Sequence record: MZ475895.1
DNA length: 64,000 nucleotides
Reading direction: 5' to 3' (one strand)
Positions 22,627-60,661 of this stretch are shown one piece after another; positions within the stretch are counted from its first letter, which is position 1; each line of letters starts with the position of its first letter. A program made the position numbers and the translations under genes. Under the pieces are notes generated by a model. The model saw only the letters and a program-made list of their open reading frames with translations, searched no databases and was not told where the DNA came from.

Positions 22627-23874
22627 TTATTTACATGCTTTGATTGCATCAGTGATAAGGTACTGCATGTTAAGCAGAGTAGGCTTGTTCACAGATTTAG
22701 CTCCAGTGAACTTGCCGCCCATCGTCTGAGCGGTGATCTCCCAATCATTGATATCGCCATCAAAGGCAGAGAACGGAGCCTGAATAGCGACCGTCTTGCA
22801 CTTGTGATCTTCGATAGTCGCTTCATAGTACCAGTCCGGGCCTTGGCCCATACCATCGGTATGAACTGCGCGGAACTTGTATTTGCCACCTGTAGCACGC
22901 GTCAATTGATCTGCGATTTTGTTGTGTTGCGCCTGCGTGAACTTTTCAAACTTAGCAGGGGTAACTTGCGCAAAGGCAATGTCGCCGCCCAATGGCTGGA
23001 CAGGTGGGAACAGAACATATGGACCCTTCTTAGCTGCACCGCCTTTACCGTCCGTGCTTTGCACGCCAGCAACGAATGCAGCGAACGCCTTGTCGAAGTC
23101 GTTGAACGTACCCAGCTGCTTAGCTTTGCGATTGTCTGGATGACCGTGAACTACTTCTTCAATGTGCTCACCGAACTTCACGCTAGCCACAGTGAATCTA
23201 CCTTTGCCTATGAGATCCTTATAGGAGAATTTCATGTCAGCGCTTTCACCGAAAATGATAGCAGTGTTCGGTCCGTCTGGCGACGGTGCATAGAAGTAGA
23301 AGGAGTCACTTGAGCCATCATCGGCCATGCCCCCGATAGCGGAGCCAGGAACTTTCTTCAATCCCGAGAACTTAGCAATACGCTTACCTGACAATACGTC
23401 ATCGCCATCATCAGGCTCAAACAGAGTTTGGAATTGTTCCATCGTGTGAACGACTACGCCGGAAGCAGCAGAGCCAGCAGCCTTGCCCGACTTAGCATTA
23501 GTAGCAGCTACACCACGCTTGGTCGTAGCAGCAACAGCATTACCCGCAGCAGGTTTGATTTTGATCGCACGCAGAGCATTGATGGTAGCCACCAGCGTCT
23601 TCGCCTTGTACAAGTTACGCACAGCGGTGACGAGGGTTTTACCAGCAGCTTTCTTGGCGAGGCTCTGAGTAGCATCTTCGTCTTTCAGCAGCTCAAGCAG
23701 CGTAGACAACTTAGACGTGTCTAGCTCTTTGATCTTAACCAGCTCTTCCAGACGTTTGGTAATCACAGCAGCGTTCTTACCAAACAGGATAGCGGCGTTA
23801 GCCAGCTGCGGCTTAGTCGCAGATTCAGACTTAACCGTCTGCTCTTTATCGAAATTCAATTTAATCAGTGACAT
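22627..23874 (-). CDS. Lys/Ala-rich putative internal head protein with an SxSA leader
   Basis: MSLIKLNFDKEQTVKSESA; N-terminus shared with 42320..43441 and 43452..44453. Confidence 0.6.
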   Translation of the reverse strand: MSLIKLNFDKEQTVKSESATKPQLANAAILFGKNAAVITKRLEELVKIKELDTSKLSTLLELLKDEDATQSLAKKAAGKTLVTAVRNLYKAKTLVATINALRAIKIKPAAGNAVAATTKRGVAATNAKSGKAAGSAASGVVVHTMEQFQTLFEPDDGDDVLSGKRIAKFSGLKKVPGSAIGGMADDGSSDSFYFYAPSPDGPNTAIIFGESADMKFSYKDLIGKGRFTVASVKFGEHIEEVVHGHPDNRKAKQLGTFNDFDKAFAAFVAGVQSTDGKGGAAKKGPYVLFPPVQPLGGDIAFAQVTPAKFEKFTQAQHNKIADQLTRATGGKYKFRAVHTDGMGQGPDWYYEATIEDHKCKTVAIQAPFSAFDGDINDWEITAQTMGGKFTGAKSVNKPTLLNMQYLITDAIKACK

Positions 23875-23883
23875 GTTAAGTCC

Positions 23884-24435
23884 TTACTTGCGGTTTTTAG
23901 TCCAGTTAGAGTTCTGAGGTTTCTTTTCGCTTTGTGGCGAAGTGTTTTCCTCGTTAATCTCCTCCTCGTCCTCATCTTCGTCCTCGACGACAGGCTCAGC
24001 AGCAGGCGCGGCTTCGATCTTAGTCACTTCGAGAATTTGAGAGGGCAGTGGATTCTGATTTACAGATGAAGCGACAGCAGCAGGTTCGCTTACTGTAGGC
24101 TCTACAGCAGCAGTCGCACCTACAACATGTTCGTGGACGATCTGCTTAGTCAGCAACGCGCCTTTCTCAGCGAGAATCTGATCAGCACGTTCTTGGTCCC
24201 ACTTAACCCACAGGATATCGAGACCCTTGTGTGCGTACATGAAACCCTGAGGCAGCTTACCACGGCCGTTGAATGGCAGACCGTTAGAAGGAACGCCAGG
24301 CTCGAACTCGTCCATCAGTTCCCACTTGCGCTTAGCCGTGATACACTTCGGCCCCCACACGCCATCACATGCACCATCATACAGATCGAGCATGGTCATG
24401 ATGACTTGGAGCTTCTGATAGAATTTATTCAGCAT
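23884..24435 (-). CDS. Protein with an N-terminal peptidoglycan-binding-like domain and an acidic tail
   Basis: LQVIMTMLDLYDGACDGVWGPKCITA resembles PG_binding_1 (LQxxL...DGxxGxxT); acidic EDEDEDEEE run. Confidence 0.5.
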   Translation of the reverse strand: MLNKFYQKLQVIMTMLDLYDGACDGVWGPKCITAKRKWELMDEFEPGVPSNGLPFNGRGKLPQGFMYAHKGLDILWVKWDQERADQILAEKGALLTKQIVHEHVVGATAAVEPTVSEPAAVASSVNQNPLPSQILEVTKIEAAPAAEPVVEDEDEDEEEINEENTSPQSEKKPQNSNWTKNRK

Positions 24436-24697
24436 CTTTCTTTTTCTCCGGACGAGGGACGTCTTTGCCGATGATACGTTTGAACAAACGCAGAGCCATA
24501 ACAGCTTCGGTTTGAGCCATGCGAGATTGCTGCTGGAACTGCATCGGATTTTCTTTCATCCAATCAACTACACGCTGCAACTCACGCGCATTAATCAGCT
24601 TTTGGGCCAGCTTACCTTGAAGGTACACACGAACACCAGTAGTGGTGATCTTCGCTGCACTGGTGCTCTCTGCCAAATTGATCACAATCTTAGTCAT
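24425..24697 (-). CDS. Small basic protein with an SxSA leader
   Basis: MTKIVINLAESTSAAK, 90 aa. Confidence 0.6.
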   Translation of the reverse strand: MTKIVINLAESTSAAKITTTGVRVYLQGKLAQKLINARELQRVVDWMKENPMQFQQQSRMAQTEAVMALRLFKRIIGKDVPRPEKKKDAE

Positions 24698-24709
24698 TAT
24701 CTTTTCCTT

Positions 24710-24733
24710 AAAAGAAAGGGGCCGAAGCCCCTT
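24710..24733 (-). terminator. Intrinsic terminator after the giant helicase
   Basis: GGGGC-UUCG-GCCCC-UUUCUUUU. Confidence 0.8.
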
Positions 24734-24736
24734 ATC

Positions 24737-27700
24737 TTACACTGACTTGTCTTTCGACGCAGTGAGTTTCAGTTTGGTCAATGCAGCCAGACACTGTTTC
24801 ATGTTCGGGATGCTGTAGCCAGCTTTCTGAATACGGTTGATACGCGCTTTCGCACCAGCAACGTTCTTCACGAAACTAATCCACATACCAGACGACAGGC
24901 TGAACGTACCGAACTTACGAGTGTTCGGGATTTTCGTTCCCACGAAGCGTTTCACTTTCGGGTTAGTCGCAAGGTCGAACATGATGCGCAGACGATCTTC
25001 CATCACCATCGGATATGCTTTGATGTGCTTAACATCTTTCGCAGAGGTATGACGAATCTGGAAGAACTGTTTCAACTGCGACTGCGCCTTAACAGCCAGC
25101 TGGTAGTTGAAGCTCAGCTTAGGCGTAGACTCATCGAAGAAGTCCTGAACGAACTCCAGACGGCGAGAGGACGGACCGTCAAAGTCCAGCTTCTTAGCCT
25201 CGATGAAGTCCAAGAACTTCTCAAAGTCAGAGTAGTACGCGCAGTCGATATACACGTAATCCCCGAACTCGGTGAACTCGAAGTCCTTGAGCGCTTTCGC
25301 ATCTGGGTCGGTCGCATCAGCATACAGAGCAACGAAGCCGTTGTACACAGTAGGCGTCAGCTCCAGAGACATATCGGTACCGTCGTCCAGTGTAACAGCA
25401 GTACCACGAACAGCCTTGCGCACTTTGTTGTCCAGCGGAGGAAGTTCAGCAGCCTTACGACGACGAACACGGGCAGCTGCCTGCTCTACGCCTTCGTTGA
25501 TTGGCTTACCTTCTTCTTTGTTCGCTTTACGTTGAGTAACGCGGGCGTTCTTACGCTCTTGAGCCTCAACTTTCTTCTCGGTTGCTTTCGAGTCGGCAGT
25601 TTGAGTCTCATCGGTCACGGTGTCTTCGACTTCAACGCGCTTGGCTTCTGCCTCAACACGCTTGCGGTCTTTAGCTGTCGCCCACGGCTTACGCACTTCA
25701 AAGAAGCGTTTCAGATCAGCAGGGGATACCTTACCAGCGTAATGCACTTTGTTCGCAGGCACAGTAACGATTTCCTCGCCACCAGCAAGACGAACACGCA
25801 CGGTACTGATAGGGCTGTCCGCACGCAGCTTACCGTCAGCAGTACGAACCGTAACGCTCACGATGATACCGTTACCGAACTCAGTCACAACAGGTGCACG
25901 GTTCAGCGCGTCTTTCACGTTCTCGCCACTTGAGAAGTTCTGGTTGCGTGCCCAATCAAGCAGACGCTCCAGTCCCCAGTTATGACGGTCTGGGATCTTC
26001 TGGTTAGCAACGATAGGTACCTGCTCCATGATACGGAAGTCACGCAGAGCCGGAGTAGCAGGCAGCGGCTGCATTGCTGCAATCGTTGTCTTACGCATCT
26101 CTTGGAACTCTTGCGCTTCAATATCGTTCAGGTCACGCTTGGCCAGGAAGTACGGCTTAAAGTCTTCCATCGTGTTGTTATCGATCAACAGACTTGCATT
26201 CATCTTGATTGGAGCAAGCTGATACTGGTCGAGTTTCTCGTAACGCTGGTTACCTTTCTCGTCGAAACGAGTTTTCTCCAGCGTCTTCCACATCAGACGT
26301 GCAACCTTACCTACTTCAAGAGTCTTGTTCGTCATCACCCAATCGATGAACACGGCTTCGCGTTTCATATCGCCTGGCTTACCGTTCTCATCAAGCACGG
26401 CAGCAGCAACATCAGGACGGAAGATACGCGCAGTAGACTGATCGTATGTACCCGGCGACCACGGTGTGTCACAGCGAATGATACGACTACCCATCTGCAT
26501 GTTGTGGCCTTCACTGATTGCCTGTTCGTTAGCAATCAGAATCTGCACACGGTCATCGGTCTTGAACGCGTCAAGGTTGGCCTCTTTGTTCTGGCCTAAC
26601 TTACCGACTTCACCGTGATACACAACAGCGACCTTCTTATAGTTCTCAGGCAGAGAGTTATAGATTGCGTTTGCAGCACGCGTGTAGCGAGTGAACACAA
26701 TCAACTTGCCCTGAACCTCTGGTTTCCAGTAGTCCGGGTCTTCCGGAGGTGGAACCATTGAAGGTGGCAGTGTTTGACGCTGGAACTCTTCGGACTGTTT
26801 ACGCGCCAGATACTTCTGACCCTGATAGACAGCCATATCAAGTTCACGAGGAGTAACGCCCTGCGTCCAGTTAAAGATTTGTTGCTCTTTGACCAGCGGG
26901 TCACGTTCAGGCTGCACTTCAAAGTGCTTGCGAATACGCTCGATGATGGTCAGGACTTTAGCAGAGACGAACTTGGTGACGCCCGCGTTTTCAAACGTCA
27001 GACGAGCAACGTCATCACCCATCGGGTCGGTCAGCATCATCTCCATGCGCTGGAAGTACATGTTGAGGTCAGCGTTACCTGCGAGCAATGCGCCCAGGTC
27101 ATCACCTTCTTCAATATCATCTTCGTCAATGTCGTCAGAGGCAGTAGCTTCTGCACCATCCTCTTCGTCATCTTCACCAGCAGATGCAGCACGGCGTTTG
27201 GCGTTGTTAGCAGCTTCCTGCAACTTCTCCAACACCTGAGCATACATCGCGTTATACACCTCTTGGTGCAGCGATGAGTTAGGCACAGTCGGGTCATCAA
27301 TCTCAACCTGAATGAAGGTATCGATTGGGTTCGGCAACATGAACGCCCAGTTCTTACGCTTGAACGAGATGAACGCCGTGTGGTTAGACATACGCGAGTG
27401 AGCACGACGAATCATTTCAATGTCGTCTTTCGCGCCGTCGTATGCAACGTCGAGAGAGTCACCGAACATCGCAGGCGTCATCAGTGCAGCCTGACCAACA
27501 ATGTCACGCACGCGGTCAGTTACCAGAGTACCAGTAGCGATACGCGCATAGCGAACAGATGGTGCGGTGAATACTGCTTTGGTGTTGAAGTGCACCTGAG
27601 AGCCTGACTGGCCTCCAGAGAAGTTCTTAACCTTATGCGACTCATCCAGCATAACGTAGCTGAAATTGAAGCGGTTAACGAACTCAACAGCACCACGTAC

Positions 27701-30571
27701 GCGAACACGCACGCCACCAATGTCAACGTTGAACGTACCAGTCTGCAAGAAGCTCAGGCCAACGATGAAGAGGGTGTTCTGGGGAGCCTGCTTAATCACG
27801 TCGTACATACGGTCTTCACCCCAGGAGTTCACGGTGTCAGACGTAATAGGTACGGCGTTCCAACCATCAGCAATCTTGTGCAAGTCATCACACCAGTTCG
27901 ATACGAGGTTGGTAGGGCAGATGATCAGAGGACGAATGTTCTCTTCACCCAGGTCATTCAGCTCCTGAATGGTAGCAGCAATATCGGACAGACCAATGAT
28001 TGTCTTACCACCGCCAGGCGCGATAAAGACTGTAGCGTAACGCGGACGGCGGCGCAGTGTTTTGTGCGCTTCTACCTGATGTGGTAAGAGTGCAGCACCA
28101 GCTTTGAGTCCAGGAATACGAATGTCTTCAATCGTGATACCCTGATCAGGCTTAAGGCGTTCAATCTCAGTTTCCGCAGATTCGAAGATCTCCAGAGACT
28201 TAGGAATGACCGCGCTGTACATCTTGGAGAACGGCAGAATGATTTGCTGCAAACGTTCTGCGCCTGGCGCTTCGTCGCTTTCAACCAGAGAGCTAAACAG
28301 CTTCTTACGATCAGCATTGCCGATAGCAGCAGCCAGCTCACGATACAGCGCACCACCGAAGTAGTTGTTCAGTCGCGCCATGTCGCTGATTTTGGCAGTC
28401 TGACCCATCACAAAGTAATGCGTGTGATTAGGCAGAGACTCCATAGCACCAGCAATGTCACCGCTCATCTCAGTAACGGTAGTCGCTACCATGTTCGAGC
28501 CGCGCAGGCCAGACGCATCGTTGAGCACGCGTAGCATGATACGCATAGCAATCAGACCAGAATCACCCTGAGCCAGAGTAAAGTCATTCTCAATCAGACC
28601 CGCGTACAGGTTGTTGTCGAGAGAGCTTTCGGTCAGTGACGCGTTCTCTGCATCCATACCGATTGCAGCACGCGCTTGCTTGATCAGCGTAGGCAGATCA
28701 GGCACCAGCTTGTGGTTGAATGCGAAAGAATACGCAGCCACAGTCTGTGCGATGATGCTAACAAGGCCATCAACTTCCGAGTCTTCGGTAGTCGTGAACA
28801 CGATGGTCTTATCGTTGACGCTATCGATCAGTTTGCCCTTCGCAGCTTCCAGTTTAGCCGCCTGCAACAGCAGGTCATTAGCAACACGATACGAGGTCAT
28901 GTTACCGCTAGACTGGTTGCTCATGATGTTGCGGATAACGTTCGACGCTGAGCGGAAGTTAGGCGTTTCGCCAGGCTCTGCAAAGTCGTAACCAAGCATA
29001 TCAGCAACGTCTAACGAGTTAGGCGCTTTCATACCGACAGTACGGGTTTCGTTAACCGACAGGCCACCACCGTTCGAGGTGTTAACCACCAGCGCGAAGT
29101 CTGGGTCGACGCCGATACACACGTTGCTGAATCGCGTTAACGATTTGGCTTCCGCCTGCATCGAGTTATCGAAATCGAGGTTGCCGTTCTGAATAGCGAA
29201 GATGTTGGTACGCAGCGTCTGGTGTTCAGTAGACAGCGGTACGCCTTTCGCAAACAGATGTTCCAGCACGCGGTTCAATTCGGTTTCGTAGTTGCGCACC
29301 ATCTCAACGTCAATGTCTTCACGGCGCGGCAACACAGACAGCGTACCGTTAGGCATGATGGTCAGATCGTTCTCATCTGCCACAACATCATGGACAGCGT
29401 AGCCGAACTTCTCACGCAGTTGTTTGAGCGCAGGCAGACCAGTAGCAGAGGTAACGTAACGTGGGATACGCGCAGCACGCGTGATACCAGTACGAGTAGA
29501 ACCACTGATACGGAAGTAATAGCTCGTCCAGCCCTGGAACCAACGATACAGACACATGGTCTGAGTGTCAGCACCCTGAGAGATGTACTCAACCATCTCT
29601 TTGCTCAGGTTAACAATCAGGCCGCCTTCTGCGCGAATGTCGGTAGCAATTGCTACTTCGTTGAACTCCAGCGGATAGTCGTGGCTGATCTTCATCGCTT
29701 CGAGTTTGCGATCAATCATCTGCTTGCCTGGGATAGAGCGCAGGCCCAGAGTCATGAAGTCGCCGAGCGCATCAACAACGTCTTTGTCCAGATTACGGAA
29801 CAGGTTGATATCCAGATTGTGCATCTTCGGGTGAACACCACGAAGCGCCGCGTTGTAGATAGACCAGTCTTTGCCGAGAGGGATACGAACAACTTTGGTC
29901 TGGAACACGTTGGCGTTGGTACGCGCTTCACCGAAGATATCCTTGTACAGGGTCTTCGCGGCGTTGATAGCTGCCTGAGCAATATCAGAGCTATACACCT
30001 GAATGTTCATCTGCTCAAAGTTAGAGTCGTTATCGACACGAGGACGATCACTACCCTGACTGTTCGTAACGTTGAAGTTACCCGCACCAGCAGCTGGAGA
30101 CTGCGGGCATGGCGTGCCTGACATGATAATGTCTTTGCCGCCTGGGTACACGGTACTGTTTTCGATGATAGCGCCTGAGGTATTACTCAAGTTCTCCGCT
30201 AACGCCGTTTTGATTTCACGCGACAGCTTACCGCTGTTCAGCAGCACCTGAATCTTGTTCGTGGACATGTCCACATATTGCTGCACACGCTTGGTGAACT
30301 CTTCTGGCGCTACTTCCAGAATGTCTTCGAACTCAGCACCATTACGGATGATGTAGTTGAGCAAGTCGAATGCTGCATAGATACGGGCGACAGTTGACGC
30401 AGAGAACACGGCCAGTGTTTCATAGTGACGGCGTGCTTTGCCTGTCACGTACATCTTGGACATGAGCTGCTCGGAGCCGAACGGTACAGGTTTTACCGCC
30501 AGCGCCTGATTAAAGCTATCAGCAATTTGCTGGGTCGCTGTGGCGGAGGTACTGATAATCTGATTCATCAT
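24737..30571 (-). CDS. Giant SNF2/SF2-type helicase-domain protein, probably virion-associated
   Basis: 1944 aa; LLPHQ, APGGGKT, LIICP, MLDESH, IATGT, SEGHNMQ, QSTARIFR; N-terminal IISTSA. Confidence 0.8.
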   Translation of the reverse strand: MMNQIISTSATATQQIADSFNQALAVKPVPFGSEQLMSKMYVTGKARRHYETLAVFSASTVARIYAAFDLLNYIIRNGAEFEDILEVAPEEFTKRVQQYVDMSTNKIQVLLNSGKLSREIKTALAENLSNTSGAIIENSTVYPGGKDIIMSGTPCPQSPAAGAGNFNVTNSQGSDRPRVDNDSNFEQMNIQVYSSDIAQAAINAAKTLYKDIFGEARTNANVFQTKVVRIPLGKDWSIYNAALRGVHPKMHNLDINLFRNLDKDVVDALGDFMTLGLRSIPGKQMIDRKLEAMKISHDYPLEFNEVAIATDIRAEGGLIVNLSKEMVEYISQGADTQTMCLYRWFQGWTSYYFRISGSTRTGITRAARIPRYVTSATGLPALKQLREKFGYAVHDVVADENDLTIMPNGTLSVLPRREDIDVEMVRNYETELNRVLEHLFAKGVPLSTEHQTLRTNIFAIQNGNLDFDNSMQAEAKSLTRFSNVCIGVDPDFALVVNTSNGGGLSVNETRTVGMKAPNSLDVADMLGYDFAEPGETPNFRSASNVIRNIMSNQSSGNMTSYRVANDLLLQAAKLEAAKGKLIDSVNDKTIVFTTTEDSEVDGLVSIIAQTVAAYSFAFNHKLVPDLPTLIKQARAAIGMDAENASLTESSLDNNLYAGLIENDFTLAQGDSGLIAMRIMLRVLNDASGLRGSNMVATTVTEMSGDIAGAMESLPNHTHYFVMGQTAKISDMARLNNYFGGALYRELAAAIGNADRKKLFSSLVESDEAPGAERLQQIILPFSKMYSAVIPKSLEIFESAETEIERLKPDQGITIEDIRIPGLKAGAALLPHQVEAHKTLRRRPRYATVFIAPGGGKTIIGLSDIAATIQELNDLGEENIRPLIICPTNLVSNWCDDLHKIADGWNAVPITSDTVNSWGEDRMYDVIKQAPQNTLFIVGLSFLQTGTFNVDIGGVRVRVRGAVEFVNRFNFSYVMLDESHKVKNFSGGQSGSQVHFNTKAVFTAPSVRYARIATGTLVTDRVRDIVGQAALMTPAMFGDSLDVAYDGAKDDIEMIRRAHSRMSNHTAFISFKRKNWAFMLPNPIDTFIQVEIDDPTVPNSSLHQEVYNAMYAQVLEKLQEAANNAKRRAASAGEDDEEDGAEATASDDIDEDDIEEGDDLGALLAGNADLNMYFQRMEMMLTDPMGDDVARLTFENAGVTKFVSAKVLTIIERIRKHFEVQPERDPLVKEQQIFNWTQGVTPRELDMAVYQGQKYLARKQSEEFQRQTLPPSMVPPPEDPDYWKPEVQGKLIVFTRYTRAANAIYNSLPENYKKVAVVYHGEVGKLGQNKEANLDAFKTDDRVQILIANEQAISEGHNMQMGSRIIRCDTPWSPGTYDQSTARIFRPDVAAAVLDENGKPGDMKREAVFIDWVMTNKTLEVGKVARLMWKTLEKTRFDEKGNQRYEKLDQYQLAPIKMNASLLIDNNTMEDFKPYFLAKRDLNDIEAQEFQEMRKTTIAAMQPLPATPALRDFRIMEQVPIVANQKIPDRHNWGLERLLDWARNQNFSSGENVKDALNRAPVVTEFGNGIIVSVTVRTADGKLRADSPISTVRVRLAGGEEIVTVPANKVHYAGKVSPADLKRFFEVRKPWATAKDRKRVEAEAKRVEVEDTVTDETQTADSKATEKKVEAQERKNARVTQRKANKEEGKPINEGVEQAAARVRRRKAAELPPLDNKVRKAVRGTAVTLDDGTDMSLELTPTVYNGFVALYADATDPDAKALKDFEFTEFGDYVYIDCAYYSDFEKFLDFIEAKKLDFDGPSSRRLEFVQDFFDESTPKLSFNYQLAVKAQSQLKQFFQIRHTSAKDVKHIKAYPMVMEDRLRIMFDLATNPKVKRFVGTKIPNTRKFGTFSLSSGMWISFVKNVAGAKARINRIQKAGYSIPNMKQCLAALTKLKLTASKDKSV

Positions 30572-32248: not shown

Positions 32249-32253
32249 TGTTT

Positions 32254-33133: not shown

Positions 33134-33934
33134 TTAGAAGCTGTGTGCGCGAATACGATCAGCAAGAAGCGAGAAGTATTCAGGGCTGTAGCGATACACC
33201 TTAGCGTAGTAGTCGAGCAGCTTAGGCACATCAACACCCGCAGCGGCAGACACGCTATCCAGCGCAGGGAACTGGCGCTCGTCAAGCTCATCGCTCGGCA
33301 GCACAGCTACCATTGAAGCTGAGGTGATTTGTTCGCTGTTACCGTCGAAGTCAACAACGAGGAAGCTGTTGTCGTCAGTAACACGCGCAGCAACGAAGCC
33401 AACGGTCAACGCACCAGACGCAGACACGAAGCTGAGCATGTCGCCACCCTGAGCACCAGCACGGTCAGCAGCATTAGCAGACAGAGACTGAGCGACTTCA
33501 GGCAGACGTGCGTTCAGGTTGAAAGTAGAAGCGCCAGACACAGAACGAATCATATCGATCAGGTCGGCGTTATCGTTTGCTTCTGACTGGCGCACCAGAA
33601 CATCTTCACCGCTTTCAGATTTGCGAACAGCCCACATGCGCTCTTGTTTGTCCATATACATGTTCTTGGACAGAGCCTGGAACTCATCGCCCATCTGAGC
33701 AACAGGAACGATATCCTGCATACGGGTCAGAATGGTACGAACGAAGCTGGAGGTTTTACCCTGCTCAATCATCGAGGTCGCACCCTGAACAGGCATGAAC
33801 TCGCGATCACAGGAAGCGCTCACGATAGCACCGAAGTTATCGGTAATATCTTCGTTTGGGGTATGTGTAACTTGCACGATGGCCACACTCTGGGTGTCGT
33901 TGAGCTGGTCAATCTGCTTGATGAAAGCGTCCAT
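33134..33934 (-). CDS. Putative head/prohead protein with several internal SxS(A/G) sites
   Basis: Start reassigned to MDAFIK (AGGAG RBS at normal spacing); RSVSG, QSLSA and DSVSA motifs. Confidence 0.55.
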   Translation of the reverse strand: MDAFIKQIDQLNDTQSVAIVQVTHTPNEDITDNFGAIVSASCDREFMPVQGATSMIEQGKTSSFVRTILTRMQDIVPVAQMGDEFQALSKNMYMDKQERMWAVRKSESGEDVLVRQSEANDNADLIDMIRSVSGASTFNLNARLPEVAQSLSANAADRAGAQGGDMLSFVSASGALTVGFVAARVTDDNSFLVVDFDGNSEQITSASMVAVLPSDELDERQFPALDSVSAAAGVDVPKLLDYYAKVYRYSPEYFSLLADRIRAHSF

Positions 33935-36255: not shown

Positions 36256-37544
36256 TACTTGACCGACTGTTTAAGCAGACGCTTCTGTTGAGGACTCAGA
36301 CCCATAACGTCGGAGATTTGATCAATCTTCGCCAGAGTCAGAACGCCTTTAGCAGTGCCGCTAGAACCAGTCAGGCTGATCTTAACGAACTCACGTCCTT
36401 CACGACCTGTGACCAGCTGGTGGATAAGAGTGTTCTTACCGCTACGTCCCGCACGCAATGCGCTGCTTGCCATGCCCAAAATCTCGGTAACAGCTTCGCG
36501 CTTCTCAGAAGGAGACAGGCCAGGAACGAGACGCACATAAAGGCTATCGTTCTGCACACGCACGGAGTCGAAGATTTCTTTCTTGCGACCACGAACGGTA
36601 TGCTGGCGTTGACCCAACTGAGTCATGTTACGCAGGTCATCAGTCGAACGATTGATAGGCTTACGTTCGCTGTAGTTCAGGAATCCATCCAGAGCCATCA
36701 GCTGGTTGATAGCACGCTTCATTTCAGGAGCGGTTTCAATCAGACGGCCCAGTGGGAATGAGTTAGGAACTTTCTCATCCACCAGCGAGGTGATGTAGTT
36801 TTCACTCAGACCAGTAGCCACTGCAATCTTGGTAGAGACTACGATAGCATAGGTCGGATAGTGCAGGCCGTCAGAGTTCACGAAGTTATCGATGAACACA
36901 TAGGTCTGGAAGATGATTGGGTCAGTACCCTGCGCGATGAAAGTACGTGTACGAATCTTAGAGTAATCTTCTTTACTCAGAATCTTCGACAGGTAGTTAG
37001 CGATGGTAGCAGCCAACTTGGTGTGTTCTTTCGGTGCGCCGTTCTTAACGTCAATGCTCATCAAACGCACCAGCTGGGTCTGCTGGTCTTTGGCCTGATT
37101 GATAACACTAAGCAATGACTTGGAAGCGCCTGTCTGATCTTTGAAGGCACTGAACGTTTTGCTATTCAGAATCTGATAAGCAACGGACAACTCGCCGATA
37201 GCCTGAGACAACTGACTGACCTGAGCGTTATATTTAGCTTTGTTCTGGACGTCAGAAATATCAATCTTCGACAAGTCGATCACTTGGTTCAGATCGATTG
37301 ACTTGGCCTGTTTACCTTTGATTGAGCCTTCCAGATCAGAAAGTTCAATCGCTTTAGGGCTGGCGCTAACAGACAGCAGCTTCTTAGGAATGGTTACAGA
37401 GGTAGCAAGAGAGATAACGTTTTCAAGTACCTTCTTGAACTCTTTAGCAGTACGTGCATTACGCAACGCCACCATGTTCCCAGAGCCGTAATCAACGGAT
37501 GCGCTGATGCTGCTAACTTCATTGTTTTTGGCAGTCTTAGCCAT
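36255..37544 (-). CDS. Putative head/core protein with N-terminal SxSA sites
   Basis: Start MAKTAKNN (GAGGA RBS); SSISA and LSVSA motifs. Confidence 0.55.
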   Translation of the reverse strand: MAKTAKNNEVSSISASVDYGSGNMVALRNARTAKEFKKVLENVISLATSVTIPKKLLSVSASPKAIELSDLEGSIKGKQAKSIDLNQVIDLSKIDISDVQNKAKYNAQVSQLSQAIGELSVAYQILNSKTFSAFKDQTGASKSLLSVINQAKDQQTQLVRLMSIDVKNGAPKEHTKLAATIANYLSKILSKEDYSKIRTRTFIAQGTDPIIFQTYVFIDNFVNSDGLHYPTYAIVVSTKIAVATGLSENYITSLVDEKVPNSFPLGRLIETAPEMKRAINQLMALDGFLNYSERKPINRSTDDLRNMTQLGQRQHTVRGRKKEIFDSVRVQNDSLYVRLVPGLSPSEKREAVTEILGMASSALRAGRSGKNTLIHQLVTGREGREFVKISLTGSSGTAKGVLTLAKIDQISDVMGLSPQQKRLLKQSVK

Positions 37545-42319: not shown

Positions 42320-43441
42320 TTAATGCCAAGAATTTTGAGCAGCCATGCGGTCTACTTTCTTAAACTTCTGCAATTTCTTGATCGATGTTTCAAGAGCTTT
42401 GCGGGCGCTTGCGTAAGGTGCACCTGGATTAGAGCCACCGCCATTGCCACCGAAGTTAGCATAACTATTCCATTTGCCTGTCTTACTATCCTTGCTCATA
42501 CGGTAGCTTGCTGTGCCGAGTTTGTACTCAATGCTGTTCGCTTTAACCACGAACTTACCTTTCGACACGCCACCTTTCTCGATCAAGTTCTTAACGATGT
42601 TCTTGACTTCTTTCGAAGCTGGCCAGTGGTCATGAGCTTGGATAGTTACCTTGGTACCCGGTACTTTCTTAGTGCTATAACTGTCGAGAACAGTTTTACC
42701 AAGCATTGGCTTATCTTTAGACGGATCGCCAGCCATTGCGTCATCTAAAGAACTGGCTTTGGGCTTACCCAGAAGTTTTTCTGCACGATCAGCTTTGATT
42801 GCACGTTTCTTCTCTGGTGAATAAGCACCGCCGCCTACAAGATCTTTACGCTTCTTAGTAGAGGCTTTCGCAACAGGAGCTTTCTTCGCTGCTTTGGTCA
42901 CAGTCTTACTACCCAGCGCATCGAACTTAGCAGAAGCCAGGAACTTAGGCTTGAACTGACCGCGCTTGCCAGTAACGCCGAACTCGTTCAGCTTGGCAGT
43001 ACGCAATGCAGCTAATACCTTAGGAGCTTTTTCAGTAATGCCCTGAAGAGAAGTTGAGGTCAGTCCCATCTTCAAGCCAGACAGTCCGTGCTTACGCGCA
43101 TAAGACGCAGACTCTTTCAGATGCAGCTTGGCTTCTTTGAGTGCGGCGCTGCCTTTAGCTTTATAGTCAGCAGCTTTGGCAGAAGCGCGAGATTTTGCAT
43201 CACCGGTCAGCGTTTTGACTTTAGCGCGGGCCTTGCTCCACGCATCGATGTTACGCGCAGCACTAACGCCAGCAGTCTTAGCTTTCTTCAAATGACCGAG
43301 GATGGTCGTCAGTTCTGCTTTCTTCTCTGAGTTAATAACCAGAGTAGCAACGCCATTCACCTTAGCGATTTTGTAGCTAGGCTTTTTAGCAGCAGACTCA
43401 GACACAACGTGATCTGCAAGATTGATTTTAATGAGTGACAT
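42320..43441 (-). CDS. Lys/Ala-rich putative internal head protein with an SxSA leader
   Basis: MSLIKINLADHVVSESA; paralog of 43452..44453. Confidence 0.65.
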   Translation of the reverse strand: MSLIKINLADHVVSESAAKKPSYKIAKVNGVATLVINSEKKAELTTILGHLKKAKTAGVSAARNIDAWSKARAKVKTLTGDAKSRASAKAADYKAKGSAALKEAKLHLKESASYARKHGLSGLKMGLTSTSLQGITEKAPKVLAALRTAKLNEFGVTGKRGQFKPKFLASAKFDALGSKTVTKAAKKAPVAKASTKKRKDLVGGGAYSPEKKRAIKADRAEKLLGKPKASSLDDAMAGDPSKDKPMLGKTVLDSYSTKKVPGTKVTIQAHDHWPASKEVKNIVKNLIEKGGVSKGKFVVKANSIEYKLGTASYRMSKDSKTGKWNSYANFGGNGGGSNPGAPYASARKALETSIKKLQKFKKVDRMAAQNSWH

Positions 43442-43451: not shown

Positions 43452-44453
43452 TTATGCGTTGTATTGAGTCAATGGCCGTGGCTTACGCTTCGGCAAACGT
43501 TTTGTTTTTATACCAGCAGCTTTATCTGAGGCGCGTTTATCTTCGCGTGCAGAGATGCCAACTGTTTGTGACAGGTAGCTGGTCAATGAAGCCTTAGACA
43601 AGGTTTCTTTGCGCTTGCCTGAGTCAACAACATATGAATTGCCCGAAGCGTGCGTGATCTTGAGCTTGAGCTTACCATTATCATAATGGATGTTGCCGTC
43701 AGCATCACCGTACAGTTTGGCAGACGCAGCTTTTTCCTGATACTTCTCCAGCTTGTCGATAATGCTACGCAGAGCGCTACTGCTTTTGTAGATATTGTTC
43801 AGATGCTTCTTACCTTCGTCCACTTTAGGCGCGGCAGCTTTCTTCGTCACAGGCTTTGTAACTAAACGCTTGGTAGTTTTCACAGCAGGTGCTTTACCCG
43901 AAGCTGCGATCTTCTCACCAATCTTATCGAACTTATCACCAGTAGCATATCGAGGCTTCAAAGGTACTGTGCGATGTGCACCGTCTTTTGCACGGAAACT
44001 ATCAGGCTTCGCTTTACTGATCTTGCCTAACGTATAGGTCGGGTCAGTTTGTGTGATATACGACGCTTTGATGGACAGGTCGAGCGCACTCAAGCCAGCT
44101 TTCTTCAAAAGATCAGCAGCAGCTTTAGCAAGTGCTTTGGCTTCTGTTACACCGTGCTTGATAGCTGCTTTGTTATCACTAATCTTTTCACGAATAGGCG
44201 CTTTCTTTGCAGGGGTCTGAGCCTGACTTAGCTTGAGTTTCAATTTCTCAGTAGCAACACCAAGCTTTGCCGCAGACACACCGAGAGTTTTGGCCTTCTT
44301 GAGATTAGCAACGGCCTTCGTAACAGCGGACTTGTGTTTGCTGTCAATTACGAGGGCCTGTGCACCGCCGATAGGAACGAGATGATAAGCTGGCTTGGCT
44401 TTGGCCGATTCAGATACTGCAAACTCCGCCAAATTGATTTTGATAAGTGACAT
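43452..44453 (-). CDS. Lys/Ala-rich putative internal head protein with an SxSA leader
   Basis: MSLIKINLAEFAVSESA; LVIxSxxK...LKKAKTxGVSAA shared with the neighbour. Confidence 0.65.
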   Translation of the reverse strand: MSLIKINLAEFAVSESAKAKPAYHLVPIGGAQALVIDSKHKSAVTKAVANLKKAKTLGVSAAKLGVATEKLKLKLSQAQTPAKKAPIREKISDNKAAIKHGVTEAKALAKAAADLLKKAGLSALDLSIKASYITQTDPTYTLGKISKAKPDSFRAKDGAHRTVPLKPRYATGDKFDKIGEKIAASGKAPAVKTTKRLVTKPVTKKAAAPKVDEGKKHLNNIYKSSSALRSIIDKLEKYQEKAASAKLYGDADGNIHYDNGKLKLKITHASGNSYVVDSGKRKETLSKASLTSYLSQTVGISAREDKRASDKAAGIKTKRLPKRKPRPLTQYNA

Positions 44454-44462: not shown

Positions 44463-45059
44463 TTAGACTCTGCCGGTCATAGTAAATTCTTTGCCCGCAG
44501 AGTAATCTCCTAAGGCCGCATAAAGAGAATCACGCAACATCTTCTGAATGATATCCGAGTTATACGCGGACGCGTCGCGGAAAGCGACTTCAACAGTTTC
44601 AGTGCGTGGGTTGATTACAGCATAACGTAGAGGAGCAATCTCCTGAGCGTCACACCACAGATCGACAACGTGCTGTAGTCCAGGCGTCATCTGAATTTTG
44701 AAATCAGACAGCAGGAACACAGCACTTTGAATTGGCGGCGGAGCAGACTGAGAGACAACAGCATTGTCTCCAAGTTTCTCCATAGCCATAGACGCATTGT
44801 ACACTGAGGAGAATTTCGTTTTCAGTGCAGAGGTCTGTACTACCTTATAGCTATTCGATGAAATGCCCTGACGGCGCAGCTTGGCGATACGCACAACGTA
44901 ATCACCAGAATCGTCTGAGGCAAATGCAACGTAAGCGTAGCTCACGAAGCCAGGCTCCTCACTAAGCAGCTTGTGGTCGAGGGCACGAACACCCAAGACA
45001 GCACTAAGTGCCTGTAGGCCCATCTGAACTTCGCGGGACAGAGACACGTACATTTCCAT
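44463..45059 (-). CDS. Hypothetical protein with an SxS leader (start reassigned to MEMYVSLSR)
   Basis: Start 45059 avoids overlap with the lysozyme gene; internal VVSQSA. Confidence 0.6.
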   Translation of the reverse strand: MEMYVSLSREVQMGLQALSAVLGVRALDHKLLSEEPGFVSYAYVAFASDDSGDYVVRIAKLRRQGISSNSYKVVQTSALKTKFSSVYNASMAMEKLGDNAVVSQSAPPPIQSAVFLLSDFKIQMTPGLQHVVDLWCDAQEIAPLRYAVINPRTETVEVAFRDASAYNSDIIQKMLRDSLYAALGDYSAGKEFTMTGRV

Positions 45060-49888: not shown

Positions 49889-50335
49889 TTAATATCTACG
49901 AGGCTTCTTAGGCTTCTTGATCGTAGACTTAGGACGCTTGATAGCCCGCAGTGCTTTGCGTGCTTCCACAATTTGTTTGGCTACAGTGGAACGACGAGCT
50001 TTGACCTGGTCTGTATCTTGGTCAGTGCCTTTCAGCTTATCGAGTCTGTTCCATTCTTGCACCAGACGATCAACAACACCAGCACGACCTACGCGTTGCT
50101 GGTTGATGCGCACAATGTCCTGATGAGTCTTCACGGAGTTTTGTGCGTCTTTCTGTTTAGCACGCGCAGATGCAACGTGGTCAGAGTTACCCTCAGCAGA
50201 CTTCTCGTTAAGCTGCTTACGTCTAAGTGCCAGACGGCGTTGCGCTTGCTTGAGTTCGTCTTTGGAGTTCTCCAGTTGCGTCTGCATGTCTTCAAGAGGA
50301 CTTGAGCGTGCGCTCAGACTAACGAGAAGTTCCAT
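49889..50335 (-). CDS. Basic coiled-coil protein with an SxSA leader
   Basis: Start MELLVSLSAR; Arg/Lys-rich. Confidence 0.6.
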   Translation of the reverse strand: MELLVSLSARSSPLEDMQTQLENSKDELKQAQRRLALRRKQLNEKSAEGNSDHVASARAKQKDAQNSVKTHQDIVRINQQRVGRAGVVDRLVQEWNRLDKLKGTDQDTDQVKARRSTVAKQIVEARKALRAIKRPKSTIKKPKKPRRY

Positions 50336-50342: not shown

Positions 50343-50894
50343 TCACACAGGCTGTATGGTAATGATCTGGACGCCTTGTTCATTACGCGACTTGAGAATG
50401 CGGAAGCGGAAGTCTATTGGATAAATCCATTCGAGTTCATCCATAAGACCATCAAGAATCATCTCACGTTCTTCTTCGTCACCACCGAATTCTTTATCAA
50501 GATCAGCAGCCATGATAAGATTGTACGTGCGTTGCCAATAGTTGAAGGCTTTGTTCTTTGGCCCAGGAAGAATCTCCAGCATCGTGTCTGTCTTGCCTGC
50601 CTTTGCAAAACCTTTAGCAGTAGCGAAGTCTTGACTGAACGACAGGTACTTGTTGATCATCACGAAAGGATTCTTAGCCTGCTTAAACAGAGCCATGAGT
50701 TCTTTTTCGTACAGACCACGATACAGAGGCATCTCAGGACGTTCGGGGTATTTAGCGATCAGATCATCAAGCGCAGGGCTGGAGCGATTAGCGTCAATCA
50801 CATGCCCTTTATCGTGGAGCATCGTCCACATAATGTCTTGCTGTCTGTCGGTGTAGGCAGGTATCTTAGCACTGAGGCTAACCATGAGTTCCAT
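50343..50894 (-). CDS. ADP-ribosyltransferase (R-S-E clade, VIP2/Alt-like) with an SxSA leader
   Basis: LYRG, YLSFSQDFATAKGFA, DELEWIYP (ExE); N-terminus MELMVSLSAK. Confidence 0.75.
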   Translation of the reverse strand: MELMVSLSAKIPAYTDRQQDIMWTMLHDKGHVIDANRSSPALDDLIAKYPERPEMPLYRGLYEKELMALFKQAKNPFVMINKYLSFSQDFATAKGFAKAGKTDTMLEILPGPKNKAFNYWQRTYNLIMAADLDKEFGGDEEEREMILDGLMDELEWIYPIDFRFRILKSRNEQGVQIITIQPV

Positions 50895-51022: not shown

Positions 51023-51559
51023 TCAGACGGTACCTAATACTTCAAGCACATCTTCGTCGTCCACACTTGCAGACCACGAACGCATAACAGAAGCATTGCC
51101 GCGATTGCCTGTCAGCATTGATTTAACTGCTGGTGTGGCTTCGATTTCGGCATAGTGTTCCAAGAGAGCTTTGTCATCTTTGAACCACATAATGGAGTTA
51201 CCATCCTTAGGGACGATCAAGAATTGGGTAGGCTTCTGGGTGACGTTTAGCGTCAGGTAGTAATCCCCAGCACCTTTAGGAGTCAGCATCGGCATTGGCT
51301 TCATCGCATACATGAAGTCCTTAGCGTGCATGAGTTTCTGATCGCCGAGCAACCAGATTGCGCCTTCTTCGCCTTGACGCACAGCAGACAAATCGCCTTT
51401 ACGTGTTGCAATCGTTCCGAATACATCTTTATCGAAACGTGACAGACCGAAGATCAGTGATGCGAGACGCTTCAGGTCCGGGGTCGTGCATGGACTGTTG
51501 ATTACAGCCATACCCTCAGACCCAAGTGTGAATTTAGAGAGTGAAATAAAGAGTTCCAT
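51023..51559 (-). CDS. Hypothetical protein with an SxS leader (alternative start 51571)
   Basis: MELFISLSK matches the MELxVSLS starts of the next two genes. Confidence 0.6.
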   Translation of the reverse strand: MELFISLSKFTLGSEGMAVINSPCTTPDLKRLASLIFGLSRFDKDVFGTIATRKGDLSAVRQGEEGAIWLLGDQKLMHAKDFMYAMKPMPMLTPKGAGDYYLTLNVTQKPTQFLIVPKDGNSIMWFKDDKALLEHYAEIEATPAVKSMLTGNRGNASVMRSWSASVDDEDVLEVLGTV

Positions 51560-51654: not shown

Positions 51655-51669
51655 GTTAGTTATTTACCA

Positions 51670-54698: not shown

Positions 54699-55289
54699 CT
54701 ATGCCCTCAGGTCAACCAATATAGATCCGCTTAGGTCACGCAGCATCTCTCGACCAAGAGGCGTGTACATGATTTGATGCACAGCAATACGTTCGAGGAA
54801 CTGTTTGCTGGAATGCACATCGTGTCCTGTACGCTTTCGAACAAACTCTATGATCGAGGGAGCAGGTTGAATGAGGAACGTCAGTATCTCCGCATCGTGG
54901 AGAACACTACCCATGTCAGTGATTGGCTTTAGCTCAGTCTCCTGATCAAGGATATATCGGATAACGCGTTCCTCGTTACCAGTTTTAGGATTATGCTTAA
55001 AGAAGGTGCGAGCAGATTCAACCATAAGTTTGAAATCATACTCGTCATCCGCAGTAGGCATTCTGAGAAAGAGAGCAGCAAGCAACAAATTTATTTCCAC
55101 CTGTGGACCACGTTCAATGTTGAGCATCGCGTGTGCGGTGAGCACTACATCAAGCGCATAGTCACGGGTATACAGAGGATGAGAGGCTACTGTTCTGTCA
55201 AAATAGTCAAGGGCTGTGCGAAGTCCGTGACGAGATAACAGGTGCTCTGCCTTAACACGAGCTAGGCGTTGCACCCTAGTCTTCTCCAC
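54699..55289 (-). CDS. Degenerate HD-domain-like protein
   Basis: HPLYTRDYALDVV...LLAALFLR...VLHDAEIL follows the HD fold pattern, but the HD dyad is replaced. Confidence 0.45.
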   Translation of the reverse strand: MEKTRVQRLARVKAEHLLSRHGLRTALDYFDRTVASHPLYTRDYALDVVLTAHAMLNIERGPQVEINLLLAALFLRMPTADDEYDFKLMVESARTFFKHNPKTGNEERVIRYILDQETELKPITDMGSVLHDAEILTFLIQPAPSIIEFVRKRTGHDVHSSKQFLERIAVHQIMYTPLGREMLRDLSGSILVDLRA

Positions 55290-59659: not shown

Positions 59660-59693
59660 CTTGGAACCTCAAAAAGCTCGTTCTCTTGGCTGA

Positions 59694-59702
59694 TCTTTAC
59701 AG
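59694..59702 (-). promoter_or_regulatory. CTGTAAAGA variant upstream of the divergent polymerase
   Basis: 35 nt upstream of 59659. Confidence 0.45.
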
Positions 59703-59715
59703 AATCCTGCTTGTT

Positions 59716-59955
59716 CTACGTCAGAGACTCAAATTCTATCAGATAGTTGATTAGGTTAGGTAGATTAGGTATGGCATAGCATCTTATGCAGCATGAGCGC
59801 ACTATATTCACACGGAATACAGCCTTCTCTCCCAAATCCCTAGCGCCTAGACGCATATCCCTAGCCCACAGACATATCGTAGGGGTCGAAAACGCGAAAA
59901 CCGCTTTAGCATGGTTATTTGGTGCCAATTCAGCGGAATTGATTTCTAAGCGCAC
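59716..59955 (-). CDS. Possible small ORF (may be non-coding)
   Basis: 79 aa with a GTG start and weak RBS; region rich in short TAGG/CCTA repeats. Confidence 0.25.
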   Translation of the reverse strand: MRLEINSAELAPNNHAKAVFAFSTPTICLWARDMRLGARDLGEKAVFRVNIVRSCCIRCYAIPNLPNLINYLIEFESLT

Positions 59956-60001
59956 TTTGAGACTATTCTTATTGCCGTAGGTCGATTCTGTAGGAAAGTG
60001 G

Positions 60002-60661
60002 TTATTTTTTGCGCGAAATTTGCTGATTCAGTTTTTTGCCGATCTGCGTCAAAACGCGCTCAACGGTCTCTCCGTCACGCTCACCGATAGCCATAGCGAG
60101 CCTTTCGCCCTGTTCACGCGATAGCTCAGGCATAATCAGCTTGAGCATCTTTGATCGCGCCTTTGCAGACTTTGATTTGCCTTTTGACAGCGATTGCGTT
60201 TCCATTTCGGCAGCAACACGGCTCATTGTGCGCTGCACGCGACGATCTGCGAATATATCACCGAAGATATTGCCAAACAGGTCTTGGAACGAGCGTCCGC
60301 CACCAAATATCTCGTCCTTAGTGAAGCGCACTTCCTTTCCTAGCGCATTACGCTTAACGCTGTGCGTGCTTTCCACTTCGTTTTGGACGCGTGCACCTTC
60401 GATGAAGTTCTCATCAGGCCGTGATTTCTTACCTTCAGCACCGGGCTTAGTGACGCCGTTACGCAGCTCAGCACGCCCCTCAACAGCCGCATCAGGGTCA
60501 AACATGTCATCAGTGTTGACGCTCTGATTAGGGTCAAAGGGAATCTTGTCTGTCAGCTTGTTTTCATCTGGCCACGAACGAGGGATATCCGACGCAGGTT
60601 GAGGGCTATTCGTCATATCACCGTTCTTCTCGCTGTTCAGACTCACATAAATCTTGGTCAT
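60002..60661 (-). CDS. Putative head-associated protein with an SxS-type leader
   Basis: MTKIYVSLNSEK; internal QSLSK; low-complexity N-half. Confidence 0.55.
   Translation of the reverse strand: MTKIYVSLNSEKNGDMTNSPQPASDIPRSWPDENKLTDKIPFDPNQSVNTDDMFDPDAAVEGRAELRNGVTKPGAEGKKSRPDENFIEGARVQNEVESTHSVKRNALGKEVRFTKDEIFGGGRSFQDLFGNIFGDIFADRRVQRTMSRVAAEMETQSLSKGKSKSAKARSKMLKLIMPELSREQGERLAMAIGERDGETVERVLTQIGKKLNQQISRKK

Follow-up and report, generated by a model that had tools for sequence, protein, structure and literature searches.

N-terminal tags in the window

The stretch analysed here (the window, 64,000 nucleotides (nt)) belongs to sequence record MZ475895.1, the Erwinia jumbo phage pEa_SNUABM_14 (Snuvirus, 264 kb), of which it represents positions 124001–188000 with 100% identity; the RefSeq phage pEa_SNUABM_7 of the same genus is 99% identical to it. 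The nearest relatives are the phages Alexandra, AD1 (Alexandravirus) and Y3 (Sasquatchvirus), with about 77% nucleotide identity to the window, followed at greater distance by Yoloswag, the JA phages, PaBG and Lu11. The wider kin of the Snuvirus phages, including PaBG and Lu11, is collectively named the 'Lupandier group' (PMC7412058). Almost every gene of the window is carried by the minus strand, and ten of its proteins begin with a short tag, in which a hydrophobic strand leads into two serines one residue apart (S-x-S), in one case as a variant. A preliminary description had read these N-termini as a capsid-loading and maturation signal, cut according to a Ser-type rule, by which the phage would package and inject a swappable set of proteins.

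By translation, all ten N-termini quoted in that description were found on the minus strand (Table 1). The proteins are called here by the low, stop-codon ends of their open reading frames, as was done before; their N-termini lie at the high ends. Counting positions from the expected cut, the consensus would be a hydrophobic residue (P4), Ser (P3), any residue (P2) and Ser (P1), then the cut and usually Ala (P1'). Nine of the ten tags have Ser at P1. The tenth, on 60002, has Asn there, and in its AD1 orthologue this position is Ser. The lengths of the propeptides defined in this way fall into two classes, of 8–9 and of 13–18 residues. Two of the long tags, on 42320 and 43452, share the pattern MSLIKINLA..VSES/A.

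Table 1. Coordinates of tagged proteins, of other motif-bearing proteins and of neighbouring genes. Positions are those of the window unless an accession is given; a slash marks the expected cut; aa, amino acids.
Feature	Position	Strand	Tag position	Tag or site	Orthologues	Basis or remark
415-aa protein	22627-23874	minus	23821..23874	MSLIKLNFDKEQTVKSES/ATKP (KSESA)	AD1 ..VVSVS/A (VSVSA); Y3 ..VESTS/A (ESTSA)	long tag; translation; S-x-S-A held
90-aa protein	24425-24697	minus	24659..24697	MTKIVINLAESTS/AAKI
1944-aa SNF2-type helicase	24737-30571	minus	30545..30571	MMNQIISTS/ATAT (ISTSA)	AD1 ISRSA; Y3 ISTSA	Pfam SNF2-rel_dom and Helicase_C, phrog_21391
373-aa protein	42320-43441	minus	43394..43441	MSLIKINLADHVVSES/AAKK	AD1 MALIKINIADSLLSES/A; Y3 MSLIRLKLDGSNIVSES/A	long tag
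333-aa protein	43452-44453	minus	44406..44453	MSLIKINLAEFAVSES/AKAK	Y3 MKIKLNVAETLASES/A	long tag
Gene 44463	44463-45059	minus	45036..45059	MEMYVSLS/REVQ (VSLSR)	AD1 –; Y3 VSLAA	short tag
148-aa protein	49889-50335	minus	50312..50335	MELLVSLS/ARSS	AD1 MEIMVSLS/V; Y3 MKILISLS/A	short tag; phrog_28362
183-aa putative ADP-ribosyltransferase	50343-50894	minus	50871..50894	MELMVSLS/AKIP		short tag
178-aa protein	51023-51559	minus	51536..51559	MELFISLS/KFTL	AD1 and Y3 MEIFVSLS/K	short tag; phrog_31786
219-aa protein	60002-60661	minus	60635..60661	MTKIYVSLN/SEKN (VSLNS)	AD1 MARIKISLS/GE (ISLSG, canonical); Y3 MRVMISLN/SE (ISLNS)	variant tag
266-aa protein	33134..33934	minus		five internal S-x-S-[AG] (residues 106, 131, 150, 171, 227)		candidate core protein
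429-aa protein (N-terminal 60 residues)	36255-37544 (37365..37544)	minus		EVSSIS/A (12-15), LLSVS/A (58-61)	both kept in AD1/Y3 (LLSVSA / LQSLSA)
Nudix hydrolase	outside window			MMLNVSLS/A
gp141	outside window			MLIFLSES/A
NAD-dependent DNA ligase	outside window			MKVRLSIS/A
gp157	outside window			MVLSES/A
gp243	outside window			MEMLVSLS/H
gp253	outside window			MKIFVSLS/A
gp254	outside window			MSLVKLQGVPSLS/A
Major capsid protein	NC_061451 106963-108063, outside window
Head-maturation protease	NC_061451 112148-112927, outside window			MTQLIKSES/FD
Portal	NC_061451 5577-7502, outside window			[FV]-x-S-x-S/[AS]
gp150, 354 aa	NC_061451 111036-112100 (L011 14036-15100)	minus				Pfam KMPT-N, HELAH zinc-metallopeptidase motif
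Four PaBG proteins (NC_022096)	L038 35733-36083, 40633-41166; L043 38827-39519, 41629-42195			MQLLIAMASAE; LigT MQIKVAMYSAE; MRQLQVFMTAE; MMLAIAMGLPS		short tags
Tail sheath and fibre genes	478-11197					PHROG/Pfam
DNA polymerase I	19371-22535	minus				PHROG/Pfam
Head-tail connector	33984-35147					PHROG/Pfam; only clear head-related gene in window
Very basic Lys/Ala-rich 221-aa protein	37718-38383	minus				faint Pfam HC2 (histone H1-like)
SbcD; SbcC	38499; 47062					PHROG/Pfam
Tlde1-domain protein (DUF2778, L,D-transpeptidase-like), 121 aa	41908-42273	minus				Pfam E 1.2e-16
GH108 endolysin	45067					PHROG/Pfam
Clamp loader	51670					PHROG/Pfam

The helicase has no further detectable domains. 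For 24425 no orthologue was seen in the syntenic region of AD1; for comparison, a metagenomic relative has MKKIQIQLHESTS/K on an unrelated protein of 491 aa. When viral contigs were searched with 42320 only the phage itself matched, and it is therefore a poorly conserved cargo gene. No counterpart of 43452 is present in the syntenic region of AD1, and none of 50343 in those of AD1 or Y3. The identity of 50343 as an ADP-ribosyltransferase is putative, as it comes from a single PHROG match (phrog_832, 'RNA polymerase ADP-ribosylase', E 2.6e-13); the Pfam DRAT match is only faint and PDB and Pfam offered nothing solid.

One of the tags bears on the annotation. In GenBank and RefSeq, gene 44463 starts at 45119 (MVGLLAL..), 20 codons upstream of the tag, and overlaps the endolysin gene by 53 nt. 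Because the Y3 orthologue begins exactly at the tag (MKIFVSLA/AT, which aligns with residue 21 of the protein as annotated), the true start is likely 45059 and not 45119. For 49889 and 51023 the annotated start is the Met of the tag, though the open frame extends further upstream.

Three other sites were considered and set aside. The N-terminus of 49574 (MEHLYISMT) is not conserved, and 30568 (MSLEINARLVSLLA) is a weak candidate which we judged not to be a tag. The DNA polymerase I has GVSKSA/K at residues 33–37, with GISTSA at the same place in Y3, and its N-terminus (MVKIKHVALDF..) resembles the long tags. Since the site lies inside an N-terminal domain which in the PaBG homologue has been described as a uracil-DNA glycosylase (PaBG paper), it is probably not the end of a propeptide, though the case is ambiguous.

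Enrichment and size of the tagged set

Chance occurrence was assessed in the 99% identical RefSeq genome on those 321 of its called proteins that are 60 aa or longer, with the expectation taken from internal windows. The pattern S.S[AKR] of the preliminary description was observed within the first 22 residues of 21 proteins versus 6.7 expected (three-fold, p 6e-6), and it remained enriched when only the genome outside the window was counted (10 versus 4.4, p 0.014). A tighter pattern, [IVLK][SN][LETI]S[AKRHF], gave 13 versus 0.9 (about 14-fold, p 1.5e-11). The literal pattern passes over the head-maturation protease (SESF) and gp243 (SLSH). About eight to ten further tagged proteins are encoded outside the window, on both strands (examples in Table 1). 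At least nine tagged proteins had been claimed; these are real, and the true set is about twice as large, with approximately 20 members genome-wide.

The codons of the two serines differ between the genes as had been described (AGT CTG AGC, AGC CTC AGT, TCA CTC TCT and TCT CTG TCC were all confirmed); AGT, AGC, TCA, TCT, TCG and TCC all occur, with switches between AGY and TCN, and the DNA upstream of the tags is unrelated from gene to gene. Hence the conservation is at the protein level. The bodies behind the tags are likewise unrelated, as had been noted: all-against-all BLASTP returned a single paralogous pair, 42320 and 43452, with 37% identity over about 200 aa. The low complexity of S-x-S and the close spacing of four genes with MEL.VSLS-like starts might suggest chance, or a shared piece of 5' DNA such as a promoter or ribosome-binding cassette or a recent duplication of gene starts. 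We regard this explanation as next to negligible in view of the enrichment (p about 1e-11), the tagged genes outside the window on both strands, and the retention of the motif in orthologues of 40–50% identity; for shared 5' DNA or a promoter cassette, the comparison of codons and upstream sequences rules it out.

For a closer view of the motif 46 sites were compiled. Because they were picked for Ser at P3, that position tells nothing; among the others, Ser fills P1 in 43 of the 46 sites and Glu in none, a V, I or L stands at P4 in 32, L and E predominate at P2, and 28 sites have Ala at P1'. As P1' is variable, the cut would be expected after the second Ser and not after Ala.

The motif on head proteins

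The same motif occurs on canonical head proteins encoded elsewhere in the genome. The head-maturation protease, whose gene lies 4 kb from that of the capsid protein, itself begins with it. Among 39 homologues, reaching down to about 40% identity, most retain its S-x-S-F, in which x varies freely, and two have S-x-C-F. Wherever a protease homologue has the motif, P1' is Phe; in several of the cargo proteins it is Lys or Arg. The only sequence-profile match of this protein is phrog_18299 ('head maturation protease'); no match to Pfam, NCBIfam or PDB sequences was found. In an AlphaFold model (predicted local distance difference test, pLDDT, 83) the tag falls within residues 1–18, for which disorder is predicted. 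Searched against BFVD, the model gave 82 fold matches with E <= 1e-3, many of them annotated as prohead serine protease or COG3740. Across the 39 homologues His124 and Ser181 do not vary; they are candidate catalytic residues. There is also an extra Cys-rich, zinc-finger-like insertion (C191, C194, C206/H208). By these matches of the model, the protein is assigned to the prohead serine protease fold (HK97 gp4, T4 gp21, assemblin).

The capsid protein has two S-x-S sites. The first, LALS-x-S/TGEINA, is kept down to 45% identity, PaBG included. The second, VHS-x-S/ at residue 68, lies where a hypervariable linker begins in the Erwinia/Dickeya clade. A cut there would take off 18.6% of the protein, not far from the mass loss of about 20% that has been reported for the PaBG capsid protein. 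In one sub-clade of capsid proteins (homologues P0094, P0103–P0109, P0113, P0127 and others; L041 10001-11092) site 1 reads ALD-x-[KR]T, and many of its members have a new S-x-S (KSHSS, KSNSA, KSQSA, NSESS) 3–6 residues upstream, a shift that looks compensatory when the sequences are aligned; a few members have neither capsid site. In portal homologues with identities as low as about 50%, the motif marks the exact junction at which a variable, basic leader some 50 aa long gives way to the conserved body.

Internal S-x-S-[AG] repeats had been noted in 33134 and 36255. They are real, five in the former and two in the latter, and most are conserved in AD1 and Y3. In 33134, where IVSASC at residue 38 comes in addition to the five sites, S-x-S-[AG] is about 14 times as dense as on average across the proteins of the window, and AD1 and Y3 share the sites IRSVSG, VS[ANQ]SG and DSVSAA. 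From this pattern 33134 is a candidate core or scaffold-like protein which would be chopped into pieces. The preliminary tie between a Ser-type cleavage rule and the prohead protease has indirect support from several independent sides: the motif on the protease itself, its place at the borders of leader and body in capsid protein and portal, the invariance of the serines, the small Ala or Cys occasionally seen at P1, and, as described below, the add-on behaviour of the tag and the presence of the tagged helicase in PaBG virions.

A different protease might nevertheless read the motif. One further protease candidate, from the head module, is gp150, whose gene separates those of capsid protein and head protease and which has a Pfam KMPT-N domain and an HELAH motif; another, the protein 55276-56250 of the window, is assigned to phrog_17197 ('peptidase') and conserved in AD1, Y3 and PaBG. 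Small residues at P1 and P3 also recall the signal-peptidase rule (small-x-small at -3 and -1), so that a host enzyme of this type could be considered. We hold all of these for very improbable readers of the motif. The head protease carries it on its own N-terminus, conserved well beyond the clade in which the two other peptidases are adjacent; 55276-56250 shows no detectable catalytic family (no match in Pfam, NCBIfam or PDB); and the tags lack a charged n-region and a hydrophobic core of 10–15 residues. For the last reason export signals (Sec, Tat or lipoprotein) were rejected as well: the tags, 8–18 residues in length, lack any extended hydrophobic segment, and Glu, Asp or Lys is present in many of them.

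Conservation in related phages

In the orthologues of AD1 and Y3 both serines are held and the other residues drift (Table 1). Helicase homologues as distant as 41% identity yielded 21 distinct N-termini, and each of these reads hydrophobic-S-x-S-[AK]. Over three genera and a metagenomic relative both serines stay, P2 and P1' change, and P1 is sometimes Ala, Cys or Asn, which fits a small S1 pocket. This metagenomic contig (241 kb; capsid protein 49% identical) encodes a protease starting with MQSIS/F, and the products of five or six genes nearby begin with ..ISLS/, ..ISLC/ or ..HESTS/. Moreover, tags are found on lineage-specific genes having no homologue in the other lineages, namely AD1_189, AD1_192 and AD1_202 in AD1, and Y3_193, Y3_196 and Y3_206 in Y3.

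The helicase, protease and capsid protein of PaBG retain S-x-S, and the long-class strand M-S-L-I-K-I-N-L-A recurs on PaBG proteins (MAAIKINLAE). The PaBG NAD-dependent ligase and Nudix hydrolase have no tag and align with the tagged Snuvirus proteins just past it; the tag is therefore an add-on. This modular gain and loss fits the earlier idea of a swappable cargo, whose cutting, loading and injection we infer.

Evidence from virions

A virion proteome for Snuvirus, Alexandra or AD1 was not found in the literature, and the PaBG virion was used instead, its gene numbers being mapped to RefSeq by molecular weight (57,162, 18,908 and 35,272 Da). The PaBG homologue of the helicase (221 kDa) forms band 1 of the purified virion (PMC7412058); it starts with MGSLFTLNSLS/A. 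Among the other PaBG virion proteins that were mapped, gp257, gp261 and gp263 fall in the tail module and are untagged, as expected for tail proteins. For several proteins of the PaBG virion more than one band was seen, a sign of proteolysis (PMC7412058).

The last observation bears on the possibility that the motif is not cleaved, and that strand and S-x-S bind a scaffold, a chaperone, the portal or another partner by beta-strand addition. The tags are indeed strand-like with alternating hydrophobic residues, and the disorder predicted for the protease N-terminus would suit a docking peptide. Docking is an improbable account all the same, as processing of virion proteins has been reported for PaBG, and the position of the motif exactly at the leader/body border of capsid protein and portal, together with its five recurrences in one protein, is the pattern of a cleavage site rather than of a single docking strand.

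Proposed role of the tags

We consider it somewhat better than an even bet that the tags are propeptides which are cut after the second Ser at head maturation and which mark proteins of the capsid interior, an analogue of the T4 capsid-targeting sequence with Ser instead of Glu at P1. Along with major capsid protein, portal, protease and a core protein, the tagged proteins would be incorporated into the prohead. The activated protease would then remove the tag, 8–9 residues in the short class and 13–18 in the long class, and would also trim the leaders of capsid protein and portal, cut its own N-terminus and chop the multi-site protein 33134. The trimmed cargo, comprising the SNF2 helicase, the putative ADP-ribosyltransferase, the Nudix hydrolase, the NAD-dependent ligase and about 15 proteins of unknown function, would stay in the capsid, and at least part of it probably enters the host along with the DNA. 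That the tag directs loading is suggested by its occurrence on many unrelated proteins and by the additional strand, MSLIKINLA, that is conserved in the long class.

Several observations weigh against this interpretation. Some homologues have propeptides of only 5–6 residues, which is short for an address signal. Ligase, Nudix hydrolase and helicase are expected in the cytoplasm, and loading of such a set into a capsid would be unusual. S-x-S is a simple motif that gives false positives, the GVSKSA of the DNA polymerase being an example. The protease has no profile similarity to T4 gp21 (hhalign probability 0.4%), and the top PDB match of its model, which is T4 gp21 (5jbl), is weak (E 0.056, template modelling (TM) score 0.48). 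The PaBG capsid protein does not have the second site, and cutting at its only S-x-S (around residue 37) would remove about 10%. The short tags of PaBG differ, reading hydrophobic-A-M-x-S-A-E, so P3 may be relaxed in that lineage. The link to the virion consists of one protein, the helicase, of this distant relative. Finally, the PaBG virion protein gp191 (332 aa, very basic, 35,272 Da), which is present in several gel bands of the virion, has no tag. Thus, the tag is not the sole route into the virion and not universal for head contents. The positional counterpart of gp191 in the window, 37718-38383, adjoins SbcD; it has no S-x-S tag either and is possibly, from its composition, a DNA-bound internal protein.

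Some of these points would equally suit a mere cleavage site, cut by the prohead protease on proteins that enter the prohead by other contacts, or on enzymes that are activated or regulated by the cut late in infection, for example by exposing an N-degron. Phe, Lys and Arg are N-degron residues in bacteria once exposed at the N-terminus, and they are the P1' residues of the motif-bearing protease homologues (Phe) and of several cargo proteins (Lys, Arg). It would be pure speculation that an exposed Phe limits free activated protease in the cytoplasm. The very short propeptides and the replication enzymes in the tagged set speak for a bare site, too. In SPN3US about 80% of the head proteins are uncleaved (PMC10052503), and cleavage and loading are therefore separable. 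Still, we think a site without any role in loading unlikely: the long class has its extra strand on unrelated proteins, including those of PaBG, which a bare site does not need. We know of no precedent for a prohead protease acting in the cytoplasm.

A bolder form of the propeptide interpretation can be put forward as a doubtful possibility. Here the removable 8-residue label M-x-hydrophobic-x-[VI]-S-L-S/ would suffice to load arbitrary proteins, and the protease would be the receptor on which the S-x-S strand docks. A large, mostly environmental clade of jumbo phages would in this way ship, before gene expression, a kit that varies with the lineage (giant SNF2 helicase, NAD-dependent ligase, Nudix hydrolase, ADP-ribosyltransferase and many unknowns).

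Comparison with known systems

In T4, phiKZ and SPN3US the protease recognizes a P3-x-P1 motif with Glu at P1 (L/I-x-E in T4, S/A/G-x-E in phiKZ, A-x-E in SPN3US) and cuts capsid protein, portal, core proteins, itself and the propeptides of internal or ejected proteins; propeptides of 20–24 residues occur in SPN3US (PMC10052503). For T4, an N-terminal capsid-targeting sequence of 10 residues is sufficient for loading according to Mullaney and Black 1996, as cited in PMC10052503.

The closest likeness is to the T4 system (gp21 with IPI–III, Alt, gp23, gp24 and gp22). In both, a short N-terminal peptide (10 aa in T4, 8–18 here) sits on unrelated proteins and ends in the P3-x-P1 motif of the protease; the same motif appears in the capsid leader, in a multiply cut core protein and in the protease itself, which for the present phage is read from the sequence; and the cargo has an ADP-ribosyltransferase-like enzyme, a putative one here. 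The differences are a P1 of Ser, or in rare cases Ala, Cys or Asn, where T4 has Glu, a P3 of Ser where T4 has Leu/Ile, a protease outside the sequence-profile range of gp21, a portal that is apparently trimmed too, and a larger predicted cargo with replication and repair enzymes. With phiKZ, 201phi2-1 and SPN3US (proteases gp175/gp245) the present phage shares the giant myovirus type, N-terminal propeptides on many head or ejected proteins, trimmed portal and capsid protein, and a motif with small P3, free P2 and fixed P1, as far as its sequence tells. It differs from them in belonging to the Lupandier group, its capsid protein being nearest to those of PaBG, phiRSL1 and phage G, and in having Ser instead of Glu at P1 and mostly very short propeptides.

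The Dar system of P1, in which DarB (a 2255-aa methyltransferase/helicase) resides in the head, also has a giant helicase-type virion protein, as published for the PaBG homologue, and a loading linked to head morphogenesis, as would be the case here; no homology to DarB is claimed, and SNF2 and Helicase_C were the only domains detected. Loading of DarB depends on Hdf and DarA and not on a common N-terminal tag. HK97-type prohead proteases (COG3740, Pfam S78) and assemblin are similar in fold class (BFVD) and perhaps, if His124 and Ser181 are catalytic, in the conserved His and Ser, and differ from the protease described here, which has no Pfam or NCBIfam match and has the extra Cys-rich insertion. 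Herpesvirus assemblin cuts (V/L/I)-x-Ala/Ser, with a small P1 and a hydrophobic residue upstream, as is predicted here; the HK97 protease cuts after Lys, and HK97 has no cargo tags. Cargo-loading peptides of encapsulins are likewise short terminal peptides that address diverse enzymes into a shell of the HK97 fold. This likeness is functional only; encapsulin peptides sit at the C-terminus and stay on the cargo, and no protease takes part. The strand LIKINLA of the long tags (43394-43441, 44406-44453) may be likened to the L27-like leader of the capsid and scaffold proteins of the staphylococcal phage 80alpha (..LKLNLQFFA/S), a short, strand-like N-terminal peptide with the alternation L-K-L-N-L, which is cut after Phe-Ala by the host enzyme Prp, a cysteine protease of Firmicutes; the host of the present phage should lack the Prp system.

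Genomic context

The label 'head-block' given earlier to the surroundings of 33134 and 36255 is wrong, since PHROG and Pfam show mainly replication and tail genes around the tags (Table 1); two helicases are encoded within the window. Nowhere is the window less conserved than in the region 42300-52000, which contains six of the tagged genes: only 28% of it aligns (about 77% identity) to Alexandra-type phages, versus 94–100% of 32000-40000. By this comparison it looks like a hot spot of cargo-gene exchange. The Tlde1-domain gene adjoins the tagged cluster, is kept in AD1 and Y3, and has no tag.

Some paralogy was seen by BLASTP in the tail module, all on the minus strand. The proteins 478-1650 and 1669-2655 are sheath-like paralogues with 30% identity. 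The C-terminal 130 aa of a 1337-aa tail protein (3461-7474) are 60% identical to the 228-aa protein 8788-9474, and its N-terminal part is common to 7471-8103 and 8114-8752. Virion RNA polymerase and inner-body paralogue families, which would be a likeness to phiKZ and its kin, were not seen in the window.

Novelty and significance

The set had been called the strongest candidate for an undescribed system in this DNA. That goes too far, since the concept is established by the T4 capsid-targeting sequence and by the propeptides of phiKZ and SPN3US, and what we see is a variant. No description of the motif or of capsid-targeting tags in this clade was found in the searchable literature, whose coverage does not extend to the Y3 proteome paper; a 2026 review of jumbo phages mentions neither PaBG nor capsid-targeting sequences, and a rule of Ser at P1 and P3 was not found described in the searchable literature for any phage head protease. 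While systems of this kind are known, novelty lies in the predicted specificity, in a tag of very few residues and in a predicted cargo rich in enzymes.

For annotation, the motif corrects at least one start codon (44463-45059) and predicts mature N-termini for capsid protein, portal and protease. If the propeptide interpretation is true, this would be a second, sequence-independent case of the capsid-targeting principle of T4, with Ser at P1 and P3, and would provide a very short tag for packaging foreign proteins in phage heads. It would further indicate an unusual cargo of repair and anti-defence enzymes, and would make the capsid interior predictable from sequence alone throughout a poorly studied clade of jumbo phages, comprising PaBG, Lu11, Y3, Alexandra, AD1, Snuvirus and many metagenomic relatives.

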